Source: Octopus bimaculoides
Lineage: Eukaryota
Length of the DNA stretch: 40,780 nucleotides
Direction: 5' to 3'
Assembly: GCF_001194135.2 (NCBI RefSeq)
Contig: NC_069000.1
Coordinates: 41,051,175 to 41,091,954, forward strand
A program made the position numbers and the translations under genes. The notes beneath the pieces were generated by a model. It was not told where the DNA came from. It was given only the letters and a program-made list of their open reading frames with translations, and made no database searches. Positions within the stretch are counted from its first letter, which is position 1, and each line of letters begins with the position of its first letter. Below are positions 29 to 40,066 of this stretch, in pieces.

Positions 29-109
29 GTAATTTTGAGGTTACTCCAACTGTGCGCCATGGACGACAAATGTTTTCCAAATTCCAGTGCTGTCCAATGC
101 CTTGTGAAA
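29..109 (-). CDS. Peroxidase-like gene A, candidate coding exon 5 (VSQGIGQHWNLENICRPWRTVGVTSKL)
   Basis: AG acceptor at 111-110 is phase-compatible with the upstream phase-1 donor (G+TT=Val) and the frame is open. ICRPWRT..KLRN loosely resembles MPO CIPFFRS..IRNQ. The polypyrimidine tract is weak and the donor (gtaact at 28) is uncertain. Confidence 0.45.
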
Positions 110-279
110 CTGTACGTTATCTTGCCACACACGTGTGTTTTTGTATTTCTGTATGTGTGTGTGTATTAAGAGACGGAATATGCTGAGGAGCGAGAAAGAG
201 AATAGGAAAGAAAAAGGAAAGAAAAGTAAAACAGAAACTCACATCACAAAAAGAAACGATGTCACTTTGTAGCACTTAC

Positions 280-456
280 CTGTAATGCTTCTTTCTGTGT
301 CAAACATATCAAACATGAGGAGTTGTCCATAAATTGAAAAAAGGTGTGTTGCATCCGATGTTGTGCCGTTATGACAGGGGAACAACTGCAAACTTACATT
401 TCTGGGTAAAGGGAGACGATCTTGACCCAAGAAACTCTGGTAATTGGGAGCTCCAG
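280..456 (-). CDS. Peroxidase-like gene A, coding exon 4 (distal-site exon)
   Basis: Acceptor ttcgctttag, donor gtaagt, 177 nt, phase 1/1. Translation GAPNYQSFLGQDRLPLPRNVSLQLFPCHNGTTSDATHLFSIYGQLLMFDMFDTERSIT. LPLPRNVS matches LP-x-R-x-VS, and YGQLLMFDM aligns with MPO WGQLLDHDL. Confidence 0.92.
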
Positions 457-569
457 CTAAAGCGAAGAAATAAACGACAAATTTATTTGAGTAAATATAT
501 TAATTGGCATATATTAACTTCTTTCTATATGAAAATGTTTATCATTGCGTAATTACGTTATATTATTAT

Positions 570-848
570 TATTGTTCAGTAGTTTTATTTTTATAACGTG
601 CTTTCACTTCACTACCGAGCGCAGCTCTGTGCGCCTTGGGTATGTGCTGTGGTTTGCTGTGGTGCTCTTATGGTTACTGTATTGAAAGTGTTTTGCGTAG
701 GATGTGTACAGTGCCCAGTAGTGCAATTTTCTGTATGTTATATATATTTGTAAGTCCTGGTGTTTTTGTTATGTATTTGTCTGAATATTTTTTTATTATG
801 CCTAAGGCACCTACTATAATAGGAAATGTTTCTGTTTTTAGATTCCAC
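570..848 (-). mobile_element. 3' end of an R2/R4(Dong)-like REL-endonuclease non-LTR retrotransposon
   Basis: Minus-strand NLKTETFPIIVGALGIIKKYSDKYITKTPGLTNIYNIQKIALLGTVHILRKTLSIQ* is typical of the C-terminus of this clade, followed by a short 3' UTR and an (AAT)n tail. The 5' part lies in the gap. Confidence 0.75.
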
Positions 849-1821
849 ANNNNNNNNNNNNNNNNNNNNNNNNNNNNNNNNNNNNNNNNNNNNNNNNNNN
901 NNNNNNNNNNNNNNNNNNNNNNNNNNNNNNNNNNNNNNNNNNNNNNNNNNNNNNNNNNNNNNNNNNNNNNNNNNNNNNNNNNNNNNNNNNNNNNNNNNNN
1001 NNNNNNNNNNNNNNNNNNNNNNNNNNNNNNNNNNNNNNNNNNNNNNNNNNNNNNNNNNNNNNNNNNNNNNNNNNNNNNNNNNNNNNNNNNNNNNNNNNNN
1101 NNNNNNNNNNNNNNNNNNNNNNNNNNNNNNNNNNNNNNNNNNNNNNNNNNNNNNNNNNNNNNNNNNNNNNNNNNNNNNNNNNNNNNNNNNNNNNNNNNNN
1201 NNNNNNNNNNNNNNNNNNNNNNNNNNNNNNNNNNNNNNNNNNNNNNNNNNNNNNNNNNNNNNNNNNNNNNNNNNNNNNNNNNNNNNNNNNNNNNNNNNNN
1301 NNNNNNNNNNNNNNNNNNNNNNNNNNNNNNNNNNNNNNNNNNNNNNNNNNNNNNNNNNNNNNNNNNNNNNNNNNNNNNNNNNNNNNNNNNNNNNNNNNNN
1401 NNNNNNNNNNNNNNNNNNNNNNNNNNNNNNNNNNNNNNNNNNNNNNNNNNNNNNNNNNNNNNNNNNNNNNNNNNNNNNNNNNNNNNNNNNNNNNNNNNNN
1501 NNNNNNNNNNNNNNNNNNNNNNNNNNNNNNNNNNNNNNNNNNNNNNNNNNNNNNNNNNNNNNNNNNNNNNNNNNNNNNNNNNNNNNNNNNNNNNNNNNNN
1601 NNNNNNNNNNNNNNNNNNNNNNNNNNNNNNNNNNNNNNNNNNNNNNNNNNNNNNNNNNNNNNNNNNNNNNNNNNNNNNNNNNNNNNNNNNNNNNNNNNNN
1701 NNNNNNNNNNNNNNNNNNNATATATATATAGTGTACTGTTCCGTGATGGAATATATGTATGTATGTGTGTATGGTGCATGCATGTATGTATAGGGAAATT
1801 ACAAAACACTTTCTAACATAC

Positions 1822-1961
1822 CATATGGTAAATGTGTTAAATATCGAGCATAGGGTGACGCTGCACTGCCTGCACGTCTCGGATCATCTTTATTACACTG
1901 GCCGTTTAATTCATAGTAGTTTGTATTGAGACATGGTAATGTGATGGGATTAGGACAGTGA
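1822..1961 (-). CDS. Peroxidase-like gene A, coding exon 3
   Basis: Acceptor ttctctatttttcaacag, donor gtatgt, 140 nt, phase 2/1. HCPNPITLPCLNTNYYELNGQCNKDDPRRAGSAASPYARYLTHLPY matches the family N-terminal C..C..YR.xDG.CN..P..G...F.R.L...Y pattern. Confidence 0.9.
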
Positions 1962-3199: not shown

Positions 3200-3815
3200 T
3201 CTGCCTTAGAAATATTATCCACATGACAAACAGAATATAATGAATTCCACTGAGAATAACCTGATGATTTGTAGAAAACTGTTGTGGAAGGATTCTGACC
3301 ATCCTCAACTGACTAAAGGGTAGATTCACTTATTGTTATAAAACGAAGAACTGTGAGTGATTGGCAGAAAGATGCAAATAAAACTGAAGAAAAAGATTGT
3401 TCTCAGATTCAAGCATGACGATCGGTAACGAATAAGAAAATAGACAAAAAATATCAAGACCGAATCCGTGTTATGGCTGCGGGGGTCTACATTATAAAAA
3501 TCACGGTCCGTTTAAAAATATAAACTGCTACAAGTGTGGTAAAACAGGCCACAAAAATTCGCAATGTAGGATAGAACCTAAGAAACAGTTTAACAGAAAG
3601 AATCGCGTAAAAAGATTATCGGTGACAAATAATACGAACGATCCTGAAGGAAAATTTCTGTATGTAAAAATCAATAACACAAAAGATAAGTTATCATTGG
3701 ATACAGGCATCGACTTTTAATAATGTCACAGATACATAGAAACAAATCGACAGACCTAAATTAAATGAAACCTCGAAGAATTGGCCCAAGAGTTTCAGGA
3801 AAATATTATATTTTA
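3200..3815 (+). mobile_element. Degenerate Ty3/gypsy gag-protease fragment
   Basis: Two zinc-knuckle-like motifs, CYGCGGLHYKNH and CYKCGKTGHKNSQC, then the retropepsin-like LSLDTG and KQIDRPKL with stops and frameshifts. Confidence 0.75.
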
Positions 3816-4715
3816 AGAGGAAGGAAGTATGGCACAGTGGAGGTTCGTTTCGCGACGGAAGATGAAGTGATAAAGTACTCCACTGAAGCCATAAAAACGG
3901 AAGAATGGGTACCTTTGCCGACGTACTGTGGCAAGCGTGTTGCCAGTGTGAGAATTGGCAAAGTACCCCCAGAAATAAAGGAAACATGGCTGATGGCAGC
4001 CATTATGCTTAACATGGAAGAAGAAGCTAAAATACTCAAAGTGACGAGGTTGAATTGAAGGGGGTTGGGCATAGAGATGGCTATACAAACAAGTTTGGAA
4101 GATCTGAACAGGATTGCAGAAGAAATAGTTCTGCCCGAGGATATAAGACTGAGAGTGGTGGTGGAGGATAGGCCTCCCATGTACCCCCATGTGGAGAGAA
4201 GGGCTATATGAAGGCAAGGTGCCCCTAGAGAGAAAAAGAACAACAAATGGAACAAACTGAGGAGCGGGAGAGTGTGGACCAAGTGGTGCGCGATGATGTA
4301 AAGAAGACGACAAGAACAGAGGAGGAATTCACAGTAGTCAAAAAGCGAAAGAGAAGTGAAAGAGTGAGCTCTCCGCCAGAGAGGCAGAAAGAGAAAAAAG
4401 AAGTGGTTAAAGAGGTAGAGAAAGAGGTTGAGAAAGAAGTCGAAAAGGAGGAAGGTGAGAAGATTGTTGACAAGGAGATCGAGAAGGAGCTTGAAGAGGA
4501 GCTCGAGGAGGAGTTTGAAAAGGAGGAGGAAGCTGCAAGATTTAGGCGAACAACAGCATGAGAATGGGGCCCATGCAGCCATTTCATTTTCATTATATAA
4601 TATATTTTTCATTTTCATTCGTTTTGTGTTTTTGTCCCCACTGTGGTGTTCTGTCTGTCCTTGTGCTGTCCTCTCTGTGTTTTAGCTGTAGTGCCAAAAT
4701 AAAGAATTATTATCA
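3816..4715 (+). mobile_element. Internally deleted L1/Tx1-like LINE: ORF1 fragment, E/K-rich low-complexity stretch and 3' end
   Basis: RKYGTVEVRFATEDEVIKYSTEAIKTEEWVPLPTYCGKRVASVRIGKVPPEI is homologous to the ORF1 at 26901. Ends in aataaagaattattatc, like the 3' end at 29330. Confidence 0.65.
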
Positions 4716-5144
4716 TGTTAGTAGTAATTCACTAGCAAGGATATAAAAAATATATGGCATCGCGAAGTGAAGTATTTAGCCAATCTTTATTTCAAATTGA
4801 AAATTCAATTAATTTTAATATGCTGATCTAATATACGATACATTTTCTCTCATTCAATATAATGTATGCTTCTCTTGTATTTCATTGTCTTTTTCTCCTG
4901 CCCTCATTCTTTGACAAAAGATATTCCAACCATAATCGACTCATCTCTTTTCGAATATTCTGTATGTCTAAAACAACAGTATCAAATGGTTTACGTAGGC
5001 TGTAATTCAAGAGAAGTTTGGTTGTTAGTAAAAATGTGCAGATGACAGGCTTTTTATAACCACAGTAATATACCAACTCTCCTTTAATTACAAAATAAAA
5101 ATGTAAGTCAAACACAGGCAGTTGTAGTTTTAAGGAATACTTAC

Positions 5145-5190
5145 CCTGCAGAAAGACAGCTAGAGTAGTCAATAACAATGCAAAAAACAT
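5145..5190 (-). CDS. Peroxidase-like gene A, first coding exon (signal peptide MFFALLLTTLAVFLQ)
   Basis: Acceptor tttttccag|G ATG, hydrophobic 15-mer and donor G|gtaagt (phase 1). The joined product MFFALLLTTLAVFLQECSGDNHCP is a plausible cleavable signal peptide. The upstream acceptor implies a non-coding 5' exon, which was not located. Confidence 0.75.
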
Positions 5191-5302: not shown

Positions 5303-7194
5303 TTGTGCATATAAACTGTTTGGAAGTGGTGTACGGATTTTAAATAAGAAAAACGAGGAAGACATGATTTCAGATAATTATCTAGTTAGCTTTTTTTTTA
5401 TTTCTTTTGAGAGATTCATCGNNNNNNNNNNNNNNNNNNNNNNNNNNNNNNNNNNNNNNNNNNNNNNNNNNNNNNNNNNNNNNNNNNNNNNNNNNNNNNN
5501 NNNNNNNNNNNNNNNNNNNNNNNNNNNNNNNNNNNNNNNNNNNNNNNNNNNNNNNNNNNNNNNNNNNNNNNNNNNNNNNNNNNNNNNNNNNNNNNNNNNN
5601 NNNNNNNNNNNNNNNNNNNNNNNNNNNNNNNNNNNNNNNNNNNNNNNNNNNNNNNNNNNNNNNNNNNNNNNNNNNNNNNNNNNNNNNNNNNNNNNNNNNN
5701 NNNNNNNNNNNNNNNNNNNNNNNNNNNNNNNNNNNNNNNNNNNNNNNNNNNNNNNNNNNNNNNNNNNNNNNNNNNNNNNNNNNNNNNNNNNNNNNNNNNN
5801 NNNNNNNNNNNNNNNNNNNNNNNNNNNNNNNNNNNNNNNNNNNNNNNNNNNNNNNNNNNNNNNNNNNNNNNNNNNNNNNNNNNNNNNNNNNNNNNNNNNN
5901 NNNNNNNNNNNNNNNNNNNNNNNNNNNNNNNNNNNNNNNNNNNNNNNNNNNNNNNNNNNNNNNNNNNNNNNNNNNNNNNNNNNNNNNNNNNNNNNNNNNN
6001 NNNNNNNNNNNNNNNNNNNNNNNNNNNNNNNNNNNNNGTGTGTGTGTGTGTGTGTGTGTGCGTGTGCGTGTGCGTGTGTGTGTGTGTGTGTACGTATGTG
6101 CGTATAATACAAATTTATTTTATTTCACACGGATGAAAATATAGAAGAAAGAAGTTGAAAATGCACTGGAATTGGTTTAGATTTTATATTTTCAAATTTT
6201 TAAAGTCTTAGTCGGTTTCACAGATTTTTCTGCAGGATTCGAGTACATTTTCAACACACTTTTACCATTTATATATACAACGGTTGCTAAGAAGTTCACA
6301 TGGTTTAAGGTTCGTTTCCACCTCGTCGTTGGCAGGGTGACTGCTTTTTTTACTTAGTTTAGAGTTGTCTAATACATTATAAGCGCAATTACACAACGAA
6401 AACTTGCAGAAAACCATGGTATCTCTAACTCCCTCCCTCCCTCTATCCATTTCTCCCCCTCTCTCCCTCCCTTCCTCTCCAGCTCTCTGTAAAATCTATT
6501 GTAGTGTGAAGTAAAACACTGAGATGAGAGTGAGATATATATATGCCTCAGTTTTTCTGTGTCTGTGTAAACTGCACAGAAATATTTACTTACAGAGAAG
6601 TCACAACTAATCCATTAATACTTCAAAACTTACGTCGCAAACGTGTTGTTTCACAAAATGTTAGTGATTAGAGATAGAACCCTTGTCCTTATACAAAACC
6701 TTTCATTTCTGAAAACACGTCACTTCATATATTACTATGCATGCATACGAAACATGTTAAATTAAAATTAATTTTTTATATATTGGCGTTTTCAAACTTC
6801 TTTTTTATAAATATATACCCACTCGTATGCCACCTACACTTGTTTANNNNNNNNNNNNNNNNNNNNNNNNNNNNNNNNNNNNNNNNNNNNNNNNNNNNNN
6901 NNNNNNNNNNNNNNNNNNNNNNNNNNNNNNNNNNNNNNNNNNNNNNNNNNNNNNNNNNNNNNNNNNNNNNNNNNNNNNNNNNNNNNNNNNNNNNNNNNNN
7001 NNNNNNNNNNNNNNNNNNNNNNNNNNNNNNNNNNNNNNNNNNNNNNNNNNNNNNNNNNNNNNNNNNNNNNNNNNNNNNNNNNNNNNNNNNNNNNNNNNNN
7101 NNNNNNNNNNNNNNNNNNNNNNNNNNNNNNNNNNNNNNNNNNNNNNNNNNNNNNNNNNNNNNNNNNNNNNNNNNAGGTGTGTGATAGGAGGATG

Positions 7195-7225
<31 letters not shown>

Positions 7226-7701
7226 ACATACAAACATACAAAGATGCACACAAACTATATGTGTATACATTTCTGAGGCAGTGTATTATTATCCATGCCT
7301 ATTGCTTTCTTCACACCTGTCTAGAAATAAGTACCAGATATCTGAAAGAATTATCAGGAGTCGATATGACCGACTTCATTCTCGAAGTGTGGTTCACAAC
7401 ATGGCTGCATTTCTATGATTGCAACTAATAAAAAAGCAAAAAAGTGCAAACTGCAATAGAAGAATATCTCACAAAATTTTCAGTAAGGGCCTACCTCTCT
7501 TGTCTTTTTTTTTTTCCTTGCCGAAGGAAAATACTGCAAATATTCAGATATGACCAAGGTTTACGCAGAAGTTTCGAATTCAGAACTAGTTACTGGTGTT
7601 TCTGGTCCGGAGCAAAGTAATAAAATCGTGAATTTTCTCTATATTTATAGGCATAGCAAAACAAAATGTGATATTTAATGGCCAAGAAAAATGAACTACT
7701 T

Positions 7702-7768
<67 letters not shown>
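7702..7768. repeat. (TAC)n microsatellite
   Basis: Perfect trinucleotide run; source of the spurious poly-V/L/Y ORFs. Confidence 0.95.
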
Positions 7769-8010
7769 AACAACACTTTTTTCACTTTTTCCCTTCTTCA
7801 TTTCGATTTTCCGTTGTCCGCCCTTGCAAGCTCATTGTTCATTTCAAAGGAGTTAAATATTTCTCGTTCATTTTATTATGAAATAAAGAAAAAAGACTGG
7901 TTTTGTAAGTGTTGATTTCTTTTATCCTGTTATTGTTGTTTTTGATGCCCATGTTTTATTGTCATTAAAGTATTTTGGCCATAACTGTGTCAAGATTTTG
8001 AGTACAAAAG

Positions 8011-8415
8011 GTATCTGCACTTACCAACCATATGCTTCCGGGTTCAGTCCCACAGCGTGGCACCTTGGGCAAGTGTCTTCTACTATAGCCTCAGGCCGAC
8101 CAAAGCCTTGTGAGTGGATATGGTAGACGGAAACTGAAAGAAGCCCATCGTATATGTGTGTGCGTGTGTATATATATATTTATTTGTGTATGTGTGNNNN
8201 NNNNNNNNNNNNNNNNNNNNNNNNNNNNNNNNNNNNNNNNNNNNNNNNNNNNNNNNNNNNNNNNNNNNNNNNNNNNNNNNNNNNNNNNNNNNNTCTTTGT
8301 ATCTGTGTTTGTTTCCCCCCCACCACCACCACCACCATTGCTTCGCAACCAATGTTGGTGTGTTTATGCCCCCTTAATTTAGCGGTTCGGCAAAAGAGAC
8401 GATAGAATAAGTTCT
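8011..8415 (+). mobile_element. Abundant SINE-type repeat (family 1), interrupted by a gap
   Basis: ttccgggttcagtcccac..gtggcaccttgggcaagtgtcttctactatagcctcaggccgaccaaagcc with a B-box-like GGTTCAGTCC; a related copy lies inverted at 10850-11060. Confidence 0.75.
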
Positions 8416-8590
8416 GAGTGCTCCAGTACTGCAACGTAAAAAAAAAGTAAAAGAATAAAAGGATATACAATACATACGTGTGTGTGTGTGCGCGTGTGTG
8501 TGCGCGCGTGTGTGTGTGTATTTAGTGCTTCATGTGTGTTTTGAGTTCTTATTTTCCTAAAAAAAGAATTACACGCACACACACACACGC

Positions 8591-8638
<48 letters not shown>

Positions 8639-9684
8639 CACACACAGATACACGTAATTTTATTTCAGAATGCACGGGCTCTGTATCTATATATCATATC
8701 GATCGTATCGACTTCACAAGTTATCCACTTGCACTTTCCTAGATCTCTAACTTTCGAGCTGCCAGATCATAAAACCTCAATGGACACATCATAAACAACA
8801 TCCTAGACCGTAAACATATGCGGAGTACATACATACATACATACATACATACATACATGCATACATAGACACAAAAATCCTCGATATTATTTTTTAAAAT
8901 ATACGTTTATTATGAGTCTCCGTTAACACATACACAGTAACCTCTTTGATACTGTCTCTTGCCAGAATGAAGTGTTCATGACCGGACTACAGTTTATGCG
9001 CATACACGAGGGCAAGAACCCTCTCATTTGAAATTTTTCTTGGTAAACACTCCATGTTCGAATCTTGAACTTCATTTGTTGTTTGTGTTTGATATAAGCT
9101 TTTCAAAAATTGTCATGGGTTTTCTTACACATTTAGTATCATTAATAGTATGTACATTCTTTCTGCTTTCTAATACGAATGTTGTAAGCTTGTTTCAGTT
9201 GCTAACAAACTTCTGCGTTGAACACCTTTCGGCTGTAGGATGGATCTTATTATTACAGCTCACGTTTCATTGTGTTTTTTCAGTTAATATTCTTAATTTA
9301 TTCATCGTTGCTTTTTAATATTAAATGCCCATTCCATTTAAAGAATAGAAGGAAATCGCAGAGTTCAATATAAGAAGTTATTTTGGAAATAAGTTCTTAT
9401 ATTGAACTGTTATTTCCTGCTATTTAACTATCGCATATCATCTCTGATGATGGGATATCCTTTATATCCCTTATACAGCTGTAAGACTACCTTTTTCTTC
9501 ATAAATGTCCTAGAGATTACACACTGTCTTGGCTTTGTTGTCTCATTTTATTTAACATATACATGCTCACACAAGACTCGTCTTAGACTCCTCACTTATA
9601 CTATTATCGAACCGGGAGTCTAACACCGGTCCTTCCATAGCACTTACATAGCCTTACCTGCATTTTGGGGTCTTTTTCTCTCTG

Positions 9685-9720
<36 letters not shown>

Positions 9721-9721
<1 letters not shown>

Positions 9722-9875
9722 ATAAACTTACTTGGGAATGGATGCGTAGCGTTCAATCATATATATATGAAGTTCTAGATTCGAACATGGAGTGTTTACC
9801 AATATATATATTTTATATAAAAAAATTTTATATGATTGAAAACCACGCATCCATTCATTTCCAAGAAAGTTTATC
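9721..9875. repeat. Fold-back/MITE-like element with ~40-bp imperfect terminal inverted repeats in (TA)n
   Basis: 9721-9760 gataaacttacttgggaatggatgcgtagcgttcaatcat is near-reverse-complementary to 9832-9875 atgattgaaaaccacgcatccattcatttccaagaaagtttatc. Confidence 0.7.
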
Positions 9876-9916
9876 TTAATAATTTTGATGCGAATCTACC
9901 CTGTACTCTTCTCTCT

Positions 9917-9985
9917 CTCTTCCCTTTCGTTTTCTCTCTCTTCCCTTTCGTTTTCTCTCTCTTCCCTTTCGTTTTCTCTCTCTTC
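9917..9985. repeat. 21-bp pyrimidine tandem repeat, ~3 copies
   Basis: Unit ctcttccctttcgttttctct is repeated, followed by (CT)n. Confidence 0.85.
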
Positions 9986-10085
9986 CTTTCTCTAATTCTT
10001 TTTTCTTCACTTCTTCCCCTTTCATTTTTTCGCTCTCATCCTTTCTCTAATTCTTTTTTCTCCCCTTCACCGTTTTCTATCTGCC

Positions 10086-10135
<50 letters not shown>

Positions 10136-10849
10136 TCCTTTACTCTCTTTTGTTGCTCACATGCGACCATCGTCCATTTTTCTTTTTCTCACATGATCAT
10201 CTTTCTTTTCCTTCAGTCTGTCGCACAGACCAGGTGCATTCTTATCTGTCTCCTCTTCTATCTTTTCTTTTGTCAAAGACAATATTCCTCCAGTGTTCGC
10301 TACCTTACCTCGTCTGGCCTAACGTCTCTCCATGTTTGTTTTCGTTTGGCTTGTTGTATGTCTCCACTGTCCTGTTTTGTTACCAAATTTGACCCTCCGC
10401 AAATCCTAAATTTTATTTTGGATCGCGGGAGTAACAGTTTATTGAAGTCTCATATTGTCGTTAATTACTCGAAATGTGGAATATATGAACAACCGACAAC
10501 TGATGAAGGGTTGTTCTTTACGTTACTTGTCTTGTTTTCCACTTGTTTCTCTCGTTGTTCGCACACCCAAGTTTGCCTTCGTATTTCATGTTGTTTACGT
10601 GTTGTGACGTCCTGTACCCATATATGCATATATATACATATATATGTAAGTATGTACATATATGTATGTATATATGTATGTATATATGTATATATATANN
10701 NNNNNNNNNNNNNNNNNNNNNNNNNNNNNNNNNNATATTGTATTTTGTATTTTGTATTTGTTGCAGCCATTAGATCTAAGCTATGGGCATCGCTTTGAAA
10801 GAATCTTAGTCGAATAAATTGACCCCATGATCTATTTTTTAAACCCTAG

Positions 10850-11060
10850 CACTTATACTATCAGTATCTTTTATCGTACCGCTAGGTTACGGGAGCGTAT
10901 ATAACAGTCTTCTTTGAGCTTCTGTCTATCAGATTCACTCTTTGGTCGGCCAGTGGCAAGGATAGAAAACACTTGTCGAAGGTACCTTGCAGTTGGACTG
11001 AACCCAGAATCATGTGGTTGAAAAGTAAACTTCTTAACACACAGCGACACTTGCTCCTAC
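10850..11060 (-). mobile_element. SINE family 1 copy
   Basis: Reverse-complement similarity to 8011-8415 (ggactgaacccagaatcatgtggttg; acacttgtcgaaggtacc). Confidence 0.65.
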
Positions 11061-11550
11061 AGGTACACACGCACGCACACACACGCACACACAGGCATAT
11101 ATATTCACACATATGTATGTAGAAAAGATTAGGATAAACAGATTTCATTTATTTTAAAGTTCCTATGCTCGTACTATAACTATGGTTGTTTGGAAGATCC
11201 AAGTGCATATAGATGCCCAGCCACAACTGTTATTTGTTAGATGTTATTGATAGATTTGTCATATGCCATTGGTAATAGGTAGTATTGTCCTAGCAACTAC
11301 TAAAGGTAAGAACCATCACATAATAACTTAATTGTCCCTCTACGTCATACAATACTGACAGTAGCTCTGGATGATGATATTGGTATTGCTTAAATATCCA
11401 AGTGGGTAGAGTGAAGGTATGTTTGTTTTAAGAGAAGGAAGAAAGCACATATTTGATTACCTATTGGTTATTCGCATTAGTACATTGTTAGACATTACAG
11501 AAATAAATGCATAATAAATTGGAAAAAATATAACATAAATATACACACGT

Positions 11551-11639
<89 letters not shown>
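11551..11639. repeat. (CA)n microsatellite
   Basis: Long perfect run; others occur at 12503-12603, 5261-5300 and next to most gaps. Confidence 0.95.
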
Positions 11640-11641
<2 letters not shown>

Positions 11642-11736
11642 CATTCACTCACTCATATATATATTGAGATTAACCTACACAAATTTGAATATATCGGAAA
11701 CATTTTCAATATTTCAGGCTTTGAAATATTGAAAAT

Positions 11737-11946
11737 GCTGTGAGCTGGCAGAATCATTAGCACGCCGAACAAAATAATCAGCGGCATTTCGCCTGTCTTT
11801 GCGTTCTGAGTTCAAATCCTGCCGGGGTCAGCATTGCTTTAAATCCTTCGGTATCTTTAAAATACGTTCCAGTTGAGCATTGGGGTTGATGTCATCGGCT
11901 TACACCCTCCTCCAAAATTTCTGGCCTTGTGCCAAAATTTGAAACC
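11737..11946 (+). mobile_element. tRNA-derived SINE (family 2)
   Basis: A-box-like gagctggcagaatcattagc and B-box-like gagttcaaatcc. The same family recurs at 23975, 30006, 31965, 32128, 35790 and 38705. Confidence 0.75.
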
Positions 11947-12510
11947 AATATTTTAGACTTCAAACTATTGTGGACATATCTTCTGTGTCTTTCTTTACAG
12001 ATCATTGTTAATGCAAATATCGTACATGCTTAAATATGTTCGGTTATATAGCGTACAAAAAATATATTTATTAGATTTCATCCAACAACAAGAAACAAAA
12101 AGAAGCAAAAAGAAAAAAACACAATTTAGAAAGTAAAAAGTTATGGATCATAAAATTTTTAACTGGAAACGGACTGAGGATAGTTGCATAATTGTAGCTG
12201 AGTGCAGCGTATGTTTCTGTCAGTTCACACCAGCATATTACAATAAAATATATTTCATTTTATTGAGTTCTATTATTTCAAAACTTTTTTATACTGGGAA
12301 ATTTTGTGCTTTTGTATTTCCTCCACTTTTGTCATGTGAATATTAAAAACATAAAACATGTATATAATATAAATATTTTCCCAGAATTATATTTTTTCTG
12401 AATAGATTTGATATAAGTTTTAAAAACATATTCATAGGGTTCAATATTTCGCGTAAGTAAAACTAATTCAATAGGATTATTTGTGTTCACACACATACAT
12501 ACGCAACCAC

Positions 12511-12608
<98 letters not shown>

Positions 12609-14934: not shown

Positions 14935-14965
<31 letters not shown>

Positions 14966-16387: not shown

Positions 16388-16418
<31 letters not shown>

Positions 16419-16655: not shown

Positions 16656-16684
<29 letters not shown>

Positions 16685-23370: not shown

Positions 23371-23725
23371 CTAGAATAACATAAAGAATATCTCCCACAT
23401 TCTGTCGACCAGTTTGTAGTCATTACCCATGGTATAATAGGCTATGGATTGCGTGTCATTACCCATCGTCTGTGCGAGTATCTTACTCCGCATTATCATA
23501 ACCGGGTCCAAAATATTAAGTGAATTCGGAGATGGACATGGTATTATTTCAAATGGACTTCCTAGGCAAGGGCAAGCAAGTGGTCTGGTTGACTGACAAA
23601 GACGGTACTTTAATTGTAATCTAACACAAGGGACTGCAACAGTTACAAAAGCGGACCAATTCCTTGAAACACCACAGTATTTGCAAAAATCTATATCTGG
23701 TAAAGAAGAGCACTGGACCGTCGAC
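23371..23725 (-). CDS. Peroxidase-like gene B, terminal coding exon (end of peroxidase domain + TSP1-like module + tail, TAG stop)
   Basis: Acceptor tctttatctttcaag is phase-2 compatible with the exon at 29383. STVQCSSLPDIDF matches the family C..LP.iDl motif, then WSAFVTVAVPCVRLQLKYRLCQSTRPLACPCLGSPFEIIPC; stop at 23371-23373. Confidence 0.88.
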
Positions 23726-23974: not shown

Positions 23975-24180
23975 ATTCTAGGCACCAGCCCGAAATGTTT
24001 GGGGAGGGGGCCAGTCGATTAGGTCTACCCCAGTATGTAACTGGTATTTAATTTATCGACCCCGAAAAGATGAAAGGCAAAGCCGACCTCGGCGGAATTT
24101 GAACTCAGACCGTAAAGACAGACGAAATACCGCTAAGCATTTCGCCCGGCGCGCTAACGTTTCTGTCAGTTCGCCGCCTT
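23975..24180 (-). mobile_element. tRNA-derived SINE family 2 copy in gene B intron
   Basis: atttgaactcagaccgtaaagacagacgaaataccgctaagcatttcgcccggcgcgctaac is the reverse complement of the family consensus. Confidence 0.75.
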
Positions 24181-29382: not shown

Positions 29383-29482
29383 GAGTTATGTACAAAAGCA
29401 TTTTCTTTTACTTCAGTTAAACCCTCTACGTTACGACACAATAGTTGAGCCATAGTCACATTTCTGATCTCTGCAAGTTGCT
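29383..29482 (-). CDS. Peroxidase-like gene B exon (EQLAEIRNVTMAQLLCRNVEGLTEVKENAFVHNS)
   Basis: Acceptor ttttcgtatttcag, donor gtgagt, 100 nt, phase 1/2; matches the family QL.EIR..tla.iiCdN motif. Confidence 0.9.
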
Positions 29483-30005: not shown

Positions 30006-30350
30006 ATGCGGCGAGCTTTCGGAACTTTTAGCACGCCCGGAAACAAAACTTAACAGTACCTCGTCAGTCTGAGTTCAAATTCTGCTGTAGTGGTCTTCGC
30101 ATACAACACAATGTCAACAAAAATAGTGGTTTGAGCTATTGGAACGCGGTGAGCTTTCAGAAATGTCAGCACACCGGAAAAATTGCTTAGCATTACTTAG
30201 TCCGTCTTTATGTTCTGAGCTCATATTCCATGATGGTGGACTTCGCTTTTCATCTTTTCGGGGCAAAAAATAAGTACTATGTACAAAGGTCGATGTAATC
30301 CAGTAGCGGCTTCTCCCAAAATTTCTGCACTATTGCCAAAATTCGAAAGC
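30006..30350 (+). mobile_element. Two tandem partial copies of SINE family 2
   Basis: gagctattggaatgcggcgagctttc (~29994) and gagctattggaacgcggtgagctttc (~30134) each begin a SINE body. Confidence 0.65.
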
Positions 30351-31964: not shown

Positions 31965-32220
31965 CTGTGGCGTTTCGTCCGTCTTTACGTTCTGAATTCG
32001 AATTCCGCCCAGGAATTTCGGGGTCGATAAATAAGAACCAGTTGAACTCTGGAGTTGATGTAATAGACCTAGCCACTTCATGAACTTGCTGGCTTTGTGC
32101 CAAAATTTGAAATCATCATTTTAATTAAGGCGATGAGCTGGCAGAATCGTTAGCACGCCGGATAAAATGCTTAGCGGCATTTCGTCCGTAACTACATTCT
32201 GAGTCAAAGTTCCACCGACG
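31965..32220 (+). mobile_element. Partial SINE family 2 copies
   Basis: ggcgatgagctggcagaatcgttagcacgccggataaaatgcttagcggcatttcgtcc at 32129, and a preceding 3' part ending gtgccaaaatttgaaa. Confidence 0.7.
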
Positions 32221-32463
32221 TCGATTCTTTTGGGATTCATCCCGACAGTAATGATCTTTCCAAATTTATTTGGCGGATTAAAACGTTAGAGGAAAAGGAA
32301 ATCATTGATATTGTATACAGATGATGAAACTGAAAACTTGAATCCTGATTCTTTAATTGATGCATAAATCATCATTTTCTATGTATTTGTGCACTGTGGT
32401 AAAGCTGTAACATTATTAAATTAAAGAAAGTCAAGTAAAAATGATAAATAATTTGTAACTTAC

Positions 32464-32624
32464 CATCTGTGAATACACCGGCGTTCTCAAAATAAAGTCT
32501 GTCATTTCTTTGCAATAAATTAAAAGTATCTTCGAATAATCTTTTTAATGTTGGTCCAACCATCGCGCCAGGAACTACGTTCTCCGATAAAGCCCCAGTT
32601 AAGAATTCAATGTCGAAGATGCTT
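32464..32624 (-). CDS. Peroxidase-like gene B exon (SIFDIEFLTGALSENVVPGAMVGPTLKRLFEDTFNLLQRNDRLYFENAGVFTD)
   Basis: Acceptor tattacag, donor gtaagt, 161 nt, phase 2/1; matches the DIDL..GGL.E...G..VGPT..C....QF..L..GDRF.FEN motif. Confidence 0.92.
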
Positions 32625-33612: not shown

Positions 33613-33662
<50 letters not shown>

Positions 33663-34000
33663 NNNNNNNNNNAGAATGAGTTTAAGTCCTATATGGTTAT
33701 TAATACGCTGTATGATAAATGAAATAGGGCTTAATTTCCGCCTACGTTAGTCACCCACTCTTGCATATTACTGTCTATGAAGCGGGAAAGTGAAGTATAA
33801 TATAATAACCACCGCCATTTTATACCTTACCGTGCATTTGTTGGTATATGTATTAATCAAGAATTGTTGTCGTACATATATAACTGATACTAAATCGTCG
33901 CCCGACCGCCGTTGCAAGATGAAACTGTATTATACACGTAAATTTTTTTTCAGTTGGTCTAAATACTAGTTTAAATTAATGGTACCTAATTATAGTAAGG

Positions 34001-34250
34001 GTGATGTGTGAGTGTTTATGAGCGAAACACCTAAGCTCTACGCGGCTCTAGCAGAAGGTAATGGAGAACTTCTGCTGACTCTTTCGCCACAACTTTCTCT
34101 CACTCTTTCCTCCTGCAACTAGCAGCTCACCTGTGACGGACCGGTGTCCCGTCCAAGTGGGGAACTTATACGCCAACGAAACCGGAATACCAGCCCTCAT
34201 GAATCAGGCATGGCCCGAAATGGATAAAGCAACAACAAGAATTATATTAC
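34001..34250. mobile_element. ~250-bp SINE-like insertion present only in the left arm
   Basis: The right arm reads ...tatagtag|ggttggctga continuously; the left arm has 250 extra bases between these flanks. Confidence 0.75.
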
Positions 34251-34597
34251 GGTTGGCTGAATTAATTATAGTTGTGTGTATTTGGTTGGAGCATGTTTTC
34301 GTACAGGTGACATATTCAGTTTAATGAATACTCAGGTCAAATCTATTAGCATCCGATTTCAGGAAAATAATAATTATTGCTCATGTTCTAATGATCTAAA
34401 ATTCCTAACTGCAAAATCTTGTTAATTCTATTCGTAGACTTACATAATTGCTGCTGAACCACACAGGCCAGATGCAAACAGATTACTTTTCACATAAATA
34501 TAAGAAAACATTGCAACTGTCAAGTTGGATGCGGCTCAACAATATTTTGAATAGTATACAACCAATTAAAAAGTAAAATACTTTAATATCCACTCAC

Positions 34598-34798
34598 TGA
34601 TGAGTATTTGATAAGGCAATTTTCATTGAAGTATTGTGGTGAGGCAAATCGGGAATACTTGTAGGCAAATTAGCAATCGGAACTGTGAGTGCCAGCCAAA
34701 CGAAGTACGGTGGTAGTCCTAAATAACGCGTGTCTTGGGTTAAGATTGACACTATATCGGAATATTGACAATTGTTTCGATAAGCACAGGGTATTTCT
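34598..34798 (-). CDS. Peroxidase-like gene B exon (EIPCAYRNNCQYSDIVSILTQDTRYLGLPPYFVW...)
   Basis: Acceptor tttttttcag, donor gtgagt, 201 nt, phase 2/2, open frame. DIVSILTQDTRYLGLPPY aligns with DLAALNMQRSRDHGLPGY of MPO. Confidence 0.92.
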
Positions 34799-35219
34799 CT
34801 GAAAAAAAAAAGAGAATTAGATATCAGAAAAAGGAAGTAATAAACTTAAAGGTGCATAATAATTTCTATAATTAGTAATACACCAGACATTCTAGGGAGG
34901 GATATAACGATTAAATTGATCCCAGTATTTTATTGTTTCTTATTTCATCTTCCGAAATATGACAAATAAAATCTACTTTGAAAGAACGTAAAAGGCAAAC
35001 TTTTTGTCCAATGATCAAACCATATTTTCATCCAGTAATTTCATGACGATTGTATAATTCACACACGCACAAACACATGTACATATGCGTGTTTGCCTAT
35101 ATAGATACATACATCCAAAATGGTATTTATTTTACAGACACCAGTGCTATCAAAGAATTGTCTGCTCTGATGGAATTTGAATTCAGTAAGTAGAGTTATC
35201 GAACGGAATATAGACTTAC

Positions 35220-35640
35220 CTTCCGATTTTTAAACTGCAGTTTGTCAGCATTCCATTAACAATGTTTGTCATCTCGGTATTTGAGGTTAATGGTACATCG
35301 TGCACAAGAACATTCGAACCTACAGTATCTCTCAACATCGAAGCCCCAACTAATTTATAGGCAGCGGCGAAAGAATTAGAAACCATAGGCAAATTTGTGC
35401 TATTGTAAGTATGAGTACTTGTATTCAAACATTTAACTGAGGTGTTCGTACCGAGCAGCAGTGGTAAATATTCGTTGCATATAATATGCTGGAACATTGC
35501 AATTAACAACGTCCTTGCTTCATTTCGGCAATCTGTATTGTTGCAAGTTTGATTAAGTCTACCGACAAGTCTATTGTGTTCACGAAGGAAAACATGATAT
35601 AATGCCATCACTAAGGGGTTTTCCCTGATTGGCGCTGAAA
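35220..35640 (-). CDS. Peroxidase-like gene B central exon (SAPIRENPLVMALYHVFLREHNR...FAAAYKLVGASM...)
   Basis: Acceptor tattttgcag, donor gtaagt, 421 nt, phase 1/2; family hallmarks FLREHNR, EAR, Q.I..EYLP.LLG and SNxF. Confidence 0.93.
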
Positions 35641-36555
35641 CTGCAAAATATAGAAAACATGTTTTGGTTTTATTAAACGAAGAAATTTCTTAGTGGAAGG
35701 AGATATATCTGTAAAGGCAACTGGCTCAAATTTAGCATATTAATGGTTTTAAATCTGGCTTAAATATAGCAATTTCGTTGAATCGATCCTAATGCTCAAC
35801 TGTTAGTTATCTTGTCAATACCGAAAGGCGAAGTCGACTTCGGTGGCATTTGAACTCAAAGCGTAAAGAGGGGAAAATGCCCTAAGCATTTTATCTATGC
35901 AGTAATGATTCAGCCAAGTCACTGCCTTGGTCACTTTTAGCATATTAATAACTATTATTCATTAAGTAACAATCGACTGAAATGCTTGTTAACATTCAAC
36001 AAGATATAATTTCAGTTCTGCTAATGTTTGAATGAAATCAAAATTCAGAGGAGAGTATTCTATTGCCTTGGCCATCTTAACTGGTACTTCTCTTAAAACA
36101 CGAACATGATCTATGAAATTCAAATATTTTCTCTAAATCTTAACTATTTTCAGGAAAAATTATTATGATGATACACTTGGTATGTATATTTGTTGTATGA
36201 CTGAAGGAGATGAGTACAACCAAAAATACAAAATATTCTACATATAACTGCCTACATCTTCAGGGATAACTTCTACCAAATAACTATTCAGGGCATCAAT
36301 GATTTCCTTCATTAAATTACTACATTGGAATAAATTAATGATATGGGTTGGATTTCAAGACTTTTACACAATTATTATCGATTCAAGCGCAAAAAAAATT
36401 ACTTTAAATCAGAGATGATTCCGACATTAAATTTGTCTTTTTTCATCTCATATAAAAGACGTACAGTATAAATTAACAAAGTTCTGACAAACGATGCTCC
36501 CTGACAATAATTAATACAATGAAAGCTTATCCCAGAACGTAAAATTGAAAGCATA

Positions 36556-36679
36556 ACGAGTTATAACATTATATAGCTAAAGTATAGCGTTCATAGCCTC
36601 TCTCCCTTAACAGTTCCCTGTAAACTAGCGTTCTTGTTTCTAACGGTCATTTACTTAGCTATATAATGTTATAACTCGT
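36556..36679. repeat. Small fold-back element with perfect 25-bp inverted repeats
   Basis: acgagttataacattatatagctaa (36556-36580) is the exact reverse complement of 36655-36679; 74-bp spacer. Confidence 0.9.
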
Positions 36680-36691
36680 ACGCAACCTTAC

Positions 36692-36749
36692 CATTAAGCG
36701 CATGTCTTGCTTTTGTAAGTTGGTTCCCTGACGATGAATTTATGTGCAT
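36692..36749 (-). CDS. Candidate upstream exon of gene B (MHINSSSGNQLTKARHALN)
   Basis: Donor G|gtaagg is phase 1, as the 35640 exon requires, and the frame is open back to an ATG. No good acceptor and no clear family motif; speculative. Confidence 0.3.
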
Positions 36750-36845
36750 TTCCAGCACCTCTTACTTCTTTGGAGTAGAGTGCACATATATTTTGAAACA
36801 TATGTTGGAATTAAAGGAACTTATTGATCATATGCGTTTTGCTCC

Positions 36846-36884
<39 letters not shown>

Positions 36885-37710
36885 TATCTANNNNNNNNNN
36901 TATACATGAGATATGTACCGTTGAAGTTTTGTAGTACACTTATTCCAAGAACACATACATTTTATGTATCTTCCATGAAAAGATGAAAAGTGCTTGTATT
37001 TGCACTTTCAAAGGGGCTTTGTCCCGTTTTATAAACCCCATTAGGTGGGGTTAAATAGTATTGTAAGATGGTGAAATTTTGGAAGTCGTCTTTATCTAGT
37101 ACCTAGTAGTTATGTTGCCATATTCATTGAAATCGGAGGTATTTGAAATTTCACTGGGGGTGTTTTTCCCACACTGACCAAAAATACAATGCAATTTCAA
37201 CCATTCAGAAAAGACCCATTTCTCTTTTTCTTTCTTTCTTTATTTATATATTCATTTCTTCCTTTCTTTCTCTCTTTTATTCTTTTTTTCTCTCTCTCAC
37301 CAAGACTCAAAAAATTGGCCACACGCACATACTTACAAATACATACATACACACATAAGCGCAAGCTTACACACAAACACAGACATAGACACACAGAGAT
37401 TAAAAATCCCAATACAGTTCGATCTTTTTCCAGCTAACTCAGGTACATATAAAAGGTATGAATTTTCTTCAAATAAATCATTCATGATGAATCTCTCAAA
37501 AGGAGATGAATGTTGAAGATAAATACTTATCCAAAATCCTCCGTTTTCTTTATGTGTATGTGCGTGCGTTTCCCTAATGTATATATATATATTATATGTG
37601 TGTGTGTGTGNNNNNNNNNNNNNNNNNNNNNNNNNNNNNNNNNNNNNNNNNNNNNNNNNNNNNNNNNNNNNNNNNNNNNNNNNNNNNNNNNNNNNNNNNN
37701 NNNNNNNNNN

Positions 37711-37754
<44 letters not shown>

Positions 37755-38996
37755 CACCAGAATAAAAGTAAAGACAAAACCAAATGTTGATATTTCGATA
37801 TTTTGAATGCATGTAATAGAGGCGGATGGGTTAGGCATGTAAGGTGGAAGTGAAAAAACATAGACAGATAAGGGGAAGCTGGATGAGGGAAAATCAAGTA
37901 CATAAATAGATAAATACATGATTAAACCGGCAATAAATCTGATTGGCAAAGAGTAGGAGACGAATGAGTAGAGGAAAACGGTTTTTTTTATCACGTGGGG
38001 TTACATAACGACTTCCTCATTGCACGCATGTGGCAGTTAAGCAGTTTTTTTTTATTCAATGGTGTTCAGTATGTTTTCGGTTTTTACTTTTGGGATAAGC
38101 TTTCATTGTATCAATTATAGTTAGAGAGTATCATTTGTGAGATCTTTGTTAATTTATACTGTACGTCTTTTATATGAGAGAGATGGAAAAAGACAACTTT
38201 AATGTCGGAATCATCTCTGATTTAAAGTAATTTTTTTCTGCGCTTAAATCGATAATAATTGTGTAAAAGTCTTGAAATCCAACCCATATCATTAATCTAT
38301 TCCAATGTAGTAATTTAATGAAGGAAATCATTGATGCCCTGAAAAGTTATTTGGTAGAAGTTATCCATGAAGACGTAGGTAGTTATATATAGAATATTTT
38401 GTATTTTTGGTTGTACTCATCTCCTTCAGTCATACAACTAACATACATACCAAGTGTATCATCATAATAATTTCTCCTGAAAATAGTTAAGATTTAGAGA
38501 AAATATTTGAATTTCATAGATCATGTTCGTGTTTTAAGAGAAGTACCAGTTAAGATGGCCAAGGCAATAGAATGCCTTCCTTTGAATATTGATTTCGTTC
38601 AAACATTACAGAACTTAAATTATACCTTGTTGAATGTTAAGATGCATTTCAGTCGATTGTGACTCAATGAATAATAGTTACTAATATGCTAAATGTGATC
38701 AAAGCGGTGACCTGGCAGAATCATTACTGTATGGACAAAATGATTAGTGCATTTTTCCGTCTTTGATTTCCGTCTTTGATTTCAAATGCCACCGAGGTCA
38801 CGTCGCCTTTCAGGATTGATAAGACAACTACCTGTTGAGCACTGGGGGTCAAATCCACGCAATTGCTGTCCTTGAACCAAAATTTGAAACCCTTATTACG
38901 CTAAATTTGAGCCAGTTGCCTTTACAGATATATCTCCTTCCACTGAGGAATTTTTTGTTTAATAAAACCAAAACATACGTTTTCTATATTTTGCAG

Positions 38997-39438
38997 TTGC
39001 GGAACCAATCATGAAAAACCCCTTAGTGATGGCATTATATCATGTTTTTCTCCGTGAACACAATAGACTTGTCGAGACACTTACCCCAGCTTGCGGCAGC
39101 ACAGGTTGCCGAAATGAAGCAAGGACGTTGTTGATTGCCATGTTCCAGCATATTGTATGTAACGAATATTTACCACTGTTGCTCGGCTCCTCAGCTAGAT
39201 GTTTGAATACAAGTAATTATACTTACGATAACACAAGTTCGCCTATGGTTTCTAATGCTTTCGCCGTTGCCTACAAATTAGTTGGGGCTTCGATGTTGAG
39301 AGATACTGTAACTATCGGTGGAAATTTAAATGTTTCTGTGAAAACTATACTGAACGACTCAACGCAAGTAGACTCAGATCTCGAGATGACGAACATTGTT
39401 AATGGAATGCTGACAGACTACAGTCTTAAAATCGGAAG
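38997..39438 (+). CDS. Peroxidase-like gene C central exon (AEPIMKNPLVMALYHVFLREHNR...FAVAYKLVGASM...)
   Basis: Acceptor tattttgcag, donor gtaagt, 442 nt, phase 1/2, open frame. Paralog of 35220-35640 with a net +7 codons. Confidence 0.93.
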
Positions 39439-39865
39439 GTAAGTCTATATTCCGTTCGATAACTCTACTTACTGAATTCAAATTCCATCAGAGCAGACAA
39501 TTCTTTGATAGCACTGGTGTCTGTAAAATAAATACCATTTTGGATGTATGTATCTATATAGGCAAACACGCATATGTATATGCGTTTGTGCGTGTGTGAA
39601 TTATACAATCGTCATGAAATTACTGGATGAAAATATGGTTTGATCATTGGACAAAAAGTTTGCCTTTTACGTTCTTTCAAAGTAGATTTTATTTGTCATA
39701 TTTCGGAAGATGAAATATGAAAATAAACTATTGAGATCCAATTAATCGTTATATCCCTCCCAGTATGTGTGGTGTATTACCAATTATACAAATTATTATG
39801 CAATTATAATTCCTATAAGTTTATTGCTTCCTTTTTCTGATATCTAATTCTCTTTTTTTTTTCAG

Positions 39866-40066
39866 AGAAATACCCTGTTCTTTTCGAGACGACTGCCAAT
39901 ACTCCGATATAGTGTCAGTCTTAATCCAAGACACGCGTTATTTTGGAATACCACCGTACTTCGTTTGGCTGGCGCTCACAGTTAATTCAACTGATATGCC
40001 TTCAACGATTGATAATTTGCCCTACCAGACACCTGCGAATCTAATAGCCACAGATTCATCTTATCA
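39866..40066 (+). CDS. Peroxidase-like gene C exon (EIPCSFRDDCQYSDIVSVLIQDTRYFGIPPYFVW...)
   Basis: Acceptor ttttttttcag, donor gtgagt, 201 nt, phase 2/2, open frame; paralog of 34598-34798. Confidence 0.92.

Follow-up and report, generated by a model that had tools for sequence, protein, structure and literature searches.

The window analysed here is a stretch of 40,780 nucleotides of the Octopus bimaculoides genome, located on chromosome CM046620.1 (assembly GCA_001194135.2), where window position p corresponds to chromosome position p + 41,051,174. It contains parts of three genes, here called A, B and C, which are homologues of the animal haem peroxidases (Pfam An_peroxidase, PF03098). 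In their visible exons most of the haem-site residues are replaced. An earlier note, made from the letters of this stretch, had described three paralogous spliced genes with open frames, consistent splice phases and a signal peptide in A, and our analysis bears out this description.

Genes and exons in the window

Genes A and B are both on the minus strand, with B upstream of A. Gene C, on the plus strand, stands head-to-head with B. Only the 5′ part of gene A is within the window and its 3′ half lies outside. The window holds five exons of gene B, forming the 3′ half of the gene and followed by the stop, and gene C continues past the right end of the window. The exons are listed below (E, expect value; HMM, hidden Markov model; numbers such as P0001 denote individual proteins).

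5141..5190, minus strand: gene A exon 1, with the Met start and the signal peptide MFFALLLTTLAVFLQG and a phase-2 donor AA/GTATTC, from a scan for ATG, hydrophobicity and donor
1822..1961, minus strand: gene A exon 2, HCPNPITLPCLNTNYYELNGQCNKDDPRRAGSAASPYARYLTHLPY, covering the 'G.CNN' stretch at the N-terminal end of the peroxidase domain (family HMM E = 3.4e-7; tblastn with P0002 and P0003)
280..456, minus strand: gene A exon 3, the distal site, reading GQLLMFDMF where canonical enzymes read GQ..DHD
1..109, minus strand: candidate gene A exon 4, VSQGIGQHWNLENICRPW..., with a phase-1 fit; it leaves the window and lies near position 29, the start given in the earlier note
35220..35640, minus strand: gene B first visible exon, family positions ~213-364, containing SAPIRENPLVMALYHVFLREHNR, EYLPLLLG and AYKLVGASML (Pfam E = 3e-18)
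34598..34798, minus strand: gene B exon 2, EIPCAYRNNCQYSDIVSILTQDTRYLGLPPY, carrying the family-specific Cys pair (family HMM E = 2.8e-23)
32464..32624, minus strand: gene B exon 3, SIFDIEFLTGALSENVVPGAMVGPTLKRLFEDTFNLLQRNDRLYFENAGVFTD (Pfam E = 1.5e-10)
29383..29482, minus strand: gene B exon 4, EQLAEIRNVTMAQLLCRNVEGLTEVKENAFVHN, donor TC/GTGAGT (family HMM E = 2.6e-13; matches XP_014782530.1)
23371..23725 (coding 23374-23725), minus strand: gene B last exon and stop, with the Cys-rich module and three-helix tail (tblastn 98% to P0001)
38997..39438, plus strand: gene C first visible exon, paralogous to the gene B exon, AEPIMKNPLVMALYHVFLREHNR ... AYKLVGASML (Pfam E = 4e-19)
39866..40066, plus strand: gene C exon 2, with Asn437 replaced by Leu and Arg440 by Asp
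about 43953-44113, 46996-47095 and 53454-53805 in extended coordinates, plus strand: gene C exons 3-5, past the window

All exon junctions are AG/GT with matching donor and acceptor phases, and the positions and phases of the introns are the same as in the paralogue P0156. The signal peptide MFFALLLTTLAVFLQG of gene A aligns with MRMLVALLVTGIAVILQ and MRLFVALILTGIVAIIQG, the signal peptides of O. sinensis and O. vulgaris relatives, and exon 1 aligns with the N-termini of P0155 and P0152. Joined together, exons 1-3 of this gene give a 122-codon open frame with donor/acceptor phases 2 and 1. Its exon 3 matches Pfam An_peroxidase at E = 4.3e-5 (profile positions 44-90), just under the cut-off, and the family HMM at E = 4e-22. 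The candidate exon 4 (109-1) has no family HMM match at E < 50 and is an uncertain exon. A word-indexed protein search returned nothing for the N-terminus of gene A, which appears to be without a protein model in that collection, and nothing for a single exon.

The joined frame of gene B is 100% identical to XP_014782530.1, which NCBI names 'heme peroxidase 2' or 'peroxidase mlt-7-like', and the protein (P0001) matches Pfam An_peroxidase at E = 1e-44. The earlier note had taken gene B for a 3′ half with an intact frame, which holds for the five joined exons; what it missed was the identity of the last exon. A supposed missing exon of gene B between 34598 and 32624 was ruled out, as phases and alignment indicate a direct splice. 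The product of gene C is a 414-residue NCBI model (P0159; Pfam An_peroxidase E = 1.8e-50). The comparison with this Pfam family which the earlier note had proposed returns window exons at E = 4e-19, 3e-18 and 1.5e-10.

Haem-site residues, fold and C-terminal module

Residues are numbered as in lactoperoxidase (LPO), with the register taken from an alignment of a full-length relative and the window exons to the solved lactoperoxidase, myeloperoxidase (MPO) and cyanobacterial peroxidase; residue tables bear this register out. At Arg255 and Glu258 the register is settled because the P0153 sub-family (O. sinensis) still reads R-I-N-E there. The exon that carries the first four positions below is outside view for B and C, and the exons that carry the other six are outside view for A.

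Gln105 (distal): kept in gene A
Asp108 (haem ester link): Met in gene A
His109 (distal His): Phe in gene A
Asp110 (calcium ligand): kept in gene A
Arg255 (distal Arg): Pro in genes B and C
Glu258 (haem ester link): kept in gene B, Lys in gene C
Arg348 (haem propionate): Leu in genes B and C
His351 (proximal His): Ala in genes B and C (GASML against GHTML)
Asn437 (partner of His351): Leu in genes B and C
Arg440 (haem propionate): Asp in genes B and C

Replacements have hit the His on both sides of the haem, the distal Arg, the Asn that partners the proximal His, and the two propionate Arg, in agreement with the earlier note, in which the haem machinery was nearly all substituted. At the Arg440 position all 13 of the family members have Asp, and all 79 canonical domains among the search matches have Arg. 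The helical core motifs FLREHNR, EYLP.LLG, VGPT and GDR.Y.EN are retained, and alignments and residue tables also confirm the structural motifs that the note had listed as kept, FEN and QL.EI included. Most paralogues have the calcium loop THVIDAS (pattern T-x-x-x-D-x-S), whose exon is outside the window for A, B and C; Asp110 likewise persists in paralogues. The full-length paralogues match Pfam An_peroxidase at up to 2e-87 (family range 1e-44 to 2e-87).

The structural comparison of the peroxidase domain was made on a paralogue, P0155 of O. sinensis. Its AlphaFold model has a mean predicted local distance difference test score (pLDDT) of 73, with 80-95 in the core. As the earlier note had expected, the model superposes on LPO and MPO (Foldseek E = 5e-19, probability 1.0, template modelling score 0.62-0.68), and structures of DUOX1 are also among its fold matches. 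Judged from the alignments and this model, the fold is kept while the residues that bear the chemistry are gone. On the same grounds A, B and C belong to PF03098 as homologues by fold, and they lack the residues that mark a catalytically competent animal haem peroxidase. We infer from the sequences that the family proteins bind no haem and are not peroxidases.

One sub-family, consisting of P0153 and P0005 of O. sinensis and P0006 of Argonauta, keeps the distal His, the distal Arg, Glu258 and the proximal His (Tyr in Argonauta), and has already lost Gln105, Asp108, Asn437 and Arg440. By its residues this sub-family may be an intermediate towards haem loss. The family has also acquired residues of its own. 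A Cys pair in IPCxFRxxC is invariant, and there are changes such as FRS to YKP; Thr is replaced by His in ALYH in 12 of the 13 members, and the QH of QHITY is invariant.

Most family members carry a C-terminal extension of ~115 residues. In gene B the last exon encodes C..DFC.Y..W..C..R.C..CPC.G.PF..CP, with a Trp, an Arg and six Cys conserved in the module, followed by the three-helix tail. The C-terminal 117 residues of gene B (23374-23724, minus strand) are predicted to form a small Cys-rich beta module and three helices (AlphaFold pLDDT 84.5 from five sequences). The module matched no Pfam family, TSP_1 included. Of its top 15 Foldseek matches in the PDB, 12 are thrombospondin type-1 repeat (TSR) domains, at non-significant values (E = 0.6-2, probability at most 0.38). 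These neighbours come from F-spondin, Unc5A, semaphorin-5A, properdin and complement C8/C9, and the semaphorin-5A match has a root mean square deviation of 2.3-2.5 Å over 46 columns. We treat the weak TSR likeness of the predicted module as a lead.

Secretion, which the earlier note had proposed, is supported by the signal peptide in A and in its relatives, none of which has a hydrophobic segment after it. Beyond the signal peptide the maximum Kyte-Doolittle value is 1.5, there are no further Pfam domains, and the proteins end after the ~115-residue module. N-glycosylation sequons number 11 in B and 9 in C, mostly in variable stretches, and P0156 has none. The glycoprotein character that the earlier note had put forward is thus predicted for B and C, but it does not extend to every family member.

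At the conserved GDR(F/L)Y motif some members carry a tripeptide of the RGD type. Exon 3 of gene C (~44.0 kb in extended coordinates) reads LQRGDRLYF and is the only case of RGD; P0153 and P0003 have KGD there, and P0155 also contains KGD. Gene B reads LQRNDRLYF, which is neither, and P0156 likewise has neither.

The octopod family and the inverted pair B and C

When 1.84 billion representative proteins were searched exhaustively and without a profile, the result was a tight octopod-only group (E = 1e-41 to 1e-69), made up of proteins of O. vulgaris, O. sinensis and Argonauta hians. The next matches, at 30-35% identity, are peroxidase domains of flies, nematodes, bivalves and others. No squid or cuttlefish members turned up in this search, and no search aimed at their absence was made. 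Going by these matches, the family has so far been seen in octopods only. The best non-octopod matches of gene B are the first domains of two-domain proteins in flies and nematodes, several of them without most key residues. Many two-domain proteins from flies, nematodes and crustaceans (P0007, P0010, P0013, P0017, P0029, P0114 and others) have a first domain without most haem-site residues, and these degenerate domains are the nearest non-octopod relatives of this gene.

The cluster in O. bimaculoides comprises at least six copies, counting A, B, C, P0156 and a model of 1074 residues that resembles two fused genes. Besides A, B and C, at least three family genes are located within ~75 kb on the left side, where P0156 is found at a distance of 46 kb. 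This arrangement, together with A and B on the same strand and B and C as head-to-head inverted arms, agrees with the tandem/inverted cluster of the earlier note. The 1074-residue model, called 'peroxidase' by NCBI, is located ~70 kb left of the window (L002 32495-38701, minus strand), contains family exons and is an orthologue of O. sinensis P0157. From its length, sufficient for two neighbouring genes, it looks like a fusion of both; O. vulgaris P0154 (875 residues) is visibly such a two-gene fusion. In O. sinensis there are ~5 distinct paralogues. Apparent orthologues share only 49-60% identity when O. bimaculoides is compared with the pair O. sinensis and O. vulgaris, which may point to fast evolution.

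In public databases these genes stand under automatic names only ('peroxidase mlt-7-like', 'chorion peroxidase-like', 'heme peroxidase 2'), and we found no paper describing the family by accession or annotated name. Papers on the octopus ink proteome, the oviducal gland, the salivary gland and the Nautilus shell matrix mention peroxidases by database name only. In Paroctopus digueti a 'Peroxidase-like protein' transcript is over-expressed in the posterior salivary (venom) gland (PMC12607849), and in O. maya a 'chorion peroxidase' peaks at fertilisation in the oviducal gland (PMC8976471); neither paper gives the sequence, and either product may belong to the family.

Genes B and C sit in the two arms of an inverted repeat:

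33630..36555: left arm, with what is left of the 5′ intron of gene B and with its exons 1-2 and introns (self-BLAST 87-90% identity to 38070-40780)
36556..38069: unique centre between the arms, containing a 10-N and a 100-N gap (N, unread base), with no peroxidase exon detectable
38070..40780: right arm, with gene C; the homology runs on past the window, to ~53.8 kb in L003

How much genetic distinction has accumulated between these two genes, and where does it lie? The proteins are 68% identical, and the overall ratio of nonsynonymous to synonymous substitution rates (dN/dS, omega) is 1.04. Despite ~214 differences the frames are open over 411 and 418 codons, and not one of 5000 random-mutation simulations stayed open. 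Indels in multiples of three make up 4 of 4 in coding sequence and 14 of 62 in aligned non-coding sequence. In blocks matching the core helices dN is 0.016 and dS 0.093 (omega 0.17), and in the variable blocks of loops and tail dN is 0.32 and dS 0.25. These estimates of selection rest on one paralogue pair, B and C.

Divergence is patterned along the genes as well. In exons 1, 2 and 5, 12-19% of the aligned bases differ and in the adjoining introns 3-6.5% (3.3-6.5%), and there are intron stretches of 240 bases with 100% identity. Exons 3 and 4 differ by 1-4.5%, intron 3 by 11.7%, and the mean non-coding mismatch is ~8-9%. Exons that diverge faster than introns are not expected under neutrality. 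The pattern could reflect diversifying selection on loops, patchy gene conversion that homogenises introns but not exons, or both. P0156 was considered as a possible donor of the variable patches, and by eye neither the tail of B nor that of C copies it. Open frames, in-frame indels and patterned divergence argue against decay of B and C, and on this sequence evidence the two reading frames are kept open by selection. The constraint proposed in the earlier note is thereby upheld (0 of 5000 simulations, 4 of 4 indels in frame, core omega 0.17).

The 5′ halves of B and C require separate comment. The first visible exon of B starts at the acceptor of the sixth coding exon of the P0156 gene model, in identical phase, and the sequence that precedes it is homologous to a P0156 intron; in P0156 the five upstream exons span ~10 kb. 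The NCBI models start at an internal Met, in gene B at 35608, in gene C at 39011 and in P0156 at L002 10001. Since all three models start inside an internal exon, all are 5′-incomplete. The open frame of P0156 extends upstream of its annotated Met (GGSGDVPYMSFYG...). No other copy of the centre between B and C occurs in the neighbouring loci examined. Minus-strand open reading frames (ORFs) at 36965-37190 were considered as paralogue exons 3-5 and dropped, the resemblance being without statistical support. A 100-N gap is typical of a scaffold join. Judging by the sequence, B and C are most likely complete genes with their 5′ exons in the unassembled centre; less probably, they are truncated duplicates.

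There are 14 N runs in the window, all of them intronic or intergenic, and none touches an exon:

850-1719: gap in gene A intron 2
5422-6037: gap upstream of the gene A ATG
6847 to 22846: six gaps between the gene B stop and the gene A start, 18568-18845 and 22133-22846 among these
24622-25204, 26279-26490 and 28561-29089: gaps in gene B intron 4
33663-33672 (10 N): gap in gene B intron 2
36891-36900 (10 N) and 37611-37710 (100 N): gaps in the centre between genes B and C
40781-43363 in extended coordinates (2583 N, ~2.6 kb): a further gap, outside the 14, at which the window ends on the right

The alignment to full-length relatives is unbroken over each gap-bearing intron, the phases agree, and the gaps there conceal no coding sequence.

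The G+C content of the window is 35.7%, and microsatellites are abundant. Three ORFs lie opposite to the genes in intronic or intergenic sequence, at 26901-27836, 3765-4058 and 20746-21066, all on the plus strand. The former two have a common N-terminal pattern, K..RGK.(F/Y)GT..(M/V)RFAT..E, and are without a match in Pfam. In the third there is a weak resemblance to GIY-YIG (E = 0.006, under the cut-off), of the kind known from Penelope-like elements. All three are probably mobile-element remnants. Also present, within and outside the genes and in either orientation, are short dispersed repeats that are 70-78% identical:

8019-8143 and 10909-11026
11733-11944 and 23970-24181
23992-24180, 30143-30325 and 32124-32223

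These repeats have no Rfam or tRNA-type match at the gathering score. Nothing of relevance in the window came from Rfam, from a tandem-repeat finder or from a Pfam search of the intronic ORFs.

Interpretation, alternatives and known systems

We consider it probable that the locus is an octopod tandem and inverted cluster of pseudo-peroxidase genes, and that their products are secreted haem-free scaffolds which bind a partner via loops and the C-terminal module. By their residues the family proteins are probably binding proteins rather than enzymes. As set out above, each gene is built on the exon plan known from animal haem peroxidases, and the product carries a signal peptide and the full peroxidase fold, with the Cys-rich module and helical tail added at the C-terminus in most members. 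Phe, Pro, Ala, Leu and Asp stand in place of the residues by which haem is ligated, hydrogen-bonded and anchored and peroxide is split; the helical core is kept, and so are the calcium-site residues where paralogues show the exons in question. A rigid and glycosylated fold, stabilised by calcium, may serve as a secreted scaffold, whose surface loops and C-terminal module would bind a partner such as matrix, glycan, foreign molecules or the surface of a cell. The family would grow by local duplication, the inverted duplication of B and C included, and after duplication the core would remain under purifying selection while loops and tail change fast. The setting would be extracellular, perhaps matrix, mucus, egg coat, saliva/venom or immune recognition. 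The roles proposed in the earlier note (adhesion, matrix, venom, recognition) are guesses.

A further step would see in this cluster a diversifying repertoire of secreted recognition or binding proteins, in which the haem-less fold and the TSR-like module stay constant, the glycosylated loops, evolving faster than the introns beside them, set specificity, and local duplication, including inverted duplication, makes new specificities. We hold this to be rather unlikely. If true, the cluster would resemble immune receptors or venom components.

Several observations weigh against the scaffold interpretation. The overall dN/dS of 1.04 between B and C is, taken alone, also the outcome of relaxed constraint, and the division into conserved and variable blocks was made post hoc, after the data had been seen. 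Glu258 survives in gene B and Gln105 in gene A. Both His and the distal Arg are still present in the P0153 sub-family, and haem loss may therefore not hold for all members. In the 3.4 kb between B and C (35641 to 38996) the family HMM on six-frame ORFs and a low-threshold tblastn (best E 0.4) found no exon for family positions 1-213; the 5′ halves of the two genes being undetected in the assembly, their visible products have no signal peptide. The TSR likeness of the C-terminal module is non-significant (E ≥ 0.6) and finds no support in Pfam.

The missing 5′ halves, the internal Met at which both NCBI models begin and the overall dN/dS are also what one would expect if B and C were 5′-truncated dead pieces, drifting without function, from an inverted duplication of only the 3′ half, leaving only A or copies elsewhere as real genes. 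We regard this as unlikely. Dead pieces would hardly keep frames of 411 and 418 codons open when none of the simulations does so, nor restrict coding indels to multiples of three or hold core omega at 0.17, and neutrality predicts equal rates in exons and introns, which is not the pattern found. Moreover, the first visible exon begins at a conserved internal acceptor after intron-like sequence, as in the intact paralogue, and the 100-N gap falls exactly where the 5′ exons are expected. The central 10-N and 100-N gaps, which look like scaffold joins, can be read in another way, namely that the inverted pair is an assembly artefact at the 100-N gap, made of haplotypes or of a mis-oriented scaffold, and that there are two loci only or B and C stand in tandem. 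The end of the window at a 2.6-kb gap and introns up to 100% identical over hundreds of bases fit this explanation, which is nevertheless improbable: the two proteins share only 68% identity and are set apart by several in-frame indels and by their sequons, the non-coding mismatch of ~8-9% (11.7% in intron 3) is far over allelic variation, and downstream exons and flanks are separate in the two arms for a length exceeding 14 kb. Mis-orientation would alter the inverted arrangement but would not delete a paralogue.

The remaining alternative concerns the chemistry. The proteins might still hold haem or another cofactor via other residues (the gained His in ALYH and QHI, or Tyr, Met, Cys) and carry out redox or other catalysis. 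Conserved gained His, in ALYH in 12 of 13 members and in the invariant QH of QHITY, are absent from most canonical domains, Glu258 is kept in several members, and the P0153 sub-family keeps the distal His, the distal Arg and the proximal His. However, five to seven needed residues are replaced together in A, B and C, including both propionate Arg and the His-Asn pair, and the former ligand sites vary among paralogues, position 351 being Ala, Asp or Tyr and position 109 Phe or Ala; a new active site would not behave in this way. We therefore judge such a cofactor to be quite unlikely, and return to the secreted haem-free scaffold in comparing the family with known systems.

With LPO and MPO, the chordate members of PF03098, the octopod proteins share homology over the whole domain, a superposable model, core motifs, calcium-site residues (in paralogues) and the nature of secreted glycoproteins. 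They differ in the replacement of Asp108, His109, Arg255, Arg348, His351, Asn437 and Arg440, with Gln105 kept only in A and Glu258 in B only, and they add the Cys pair and the C-terminal Cys-rich module with its helical tail. Human PXDNL is a paralogue of an active peroxidase and has been reported to be without peroxidase activity through active-site substitutions; it is a multidomain LRR/Ig/vWC protein encoded by a single vertebrate gene, unlike a lineage-specific expanded cluster.

In the peroxidase-homology domain of DUOX the proximal His is absent and peroxidase activity has been lost, and 'dead-end' clades have been mentioned (PMC4420034). The likeness to the octopod family is a peroxidase fold without the proximal His. 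In DUOX, however, the domain forms the N-terminal ectodomain of an NADPH oxidase of the membrane, in contrast to the stand-alone, soluble, secreted and cluster-amplified octopod proteins, in which hydrophobicity and Pfam revealed no DUOX-type transmembrane, EF-hand or NADPH-oxidase regions. The first domain of the two-domain, peroxinectin-like salmon louse protein LsPxtl-1, an invertebrate family-3-like peroxidase domain, is missing the consensus haem motifs, distal and proximal (PMC10579435). Domains of this type are fused to a second, intact peroxidase domain, whereas the octopod proteins are single-domain with no intact partner, and identity is ~30-35%. Peroxinectins have been described as active haem enzymes (PMC4420034). 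These cell-adhesive proteins resemble the octopod family as secreted invertebrate proteins of the peroxidase fold, and RGD in gene C or KGD in P0153 and P0003 recalls their integrin-binding tripeptide; RGD/KGD is not shared by all octopod members, gene B having neither, and the active-site residues are lost.

Haem-less peroxidase domains are thus already known (DUOX, LsPxtl-1). The octopod case differs in its stand-alone secreted proteins, a lineage-specific cluster, a C-terminal module of their own and a stepwise series from His-retaining to fully substituted members. Enzyme folds that lose their chemistry and are reused for binding are a common route to new function. The accepted examples in the peroxidase-cyclooxygenase superfamily are domains fused to other machinery (DUOX, two-domain peroxinectin-like proteins), whereas here the proteins are stand-alone and at least 5-6 genes per octopus species lie in one cluster. 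Transcriptome and proteome papers adopt the database names and read such proteins as antimicrobial or chorion-hardening enzymes, which for the octopod family is probably wrong. Since both His ligands persist in one sub-family, the loss of haem binding can be studied step by step within this family.

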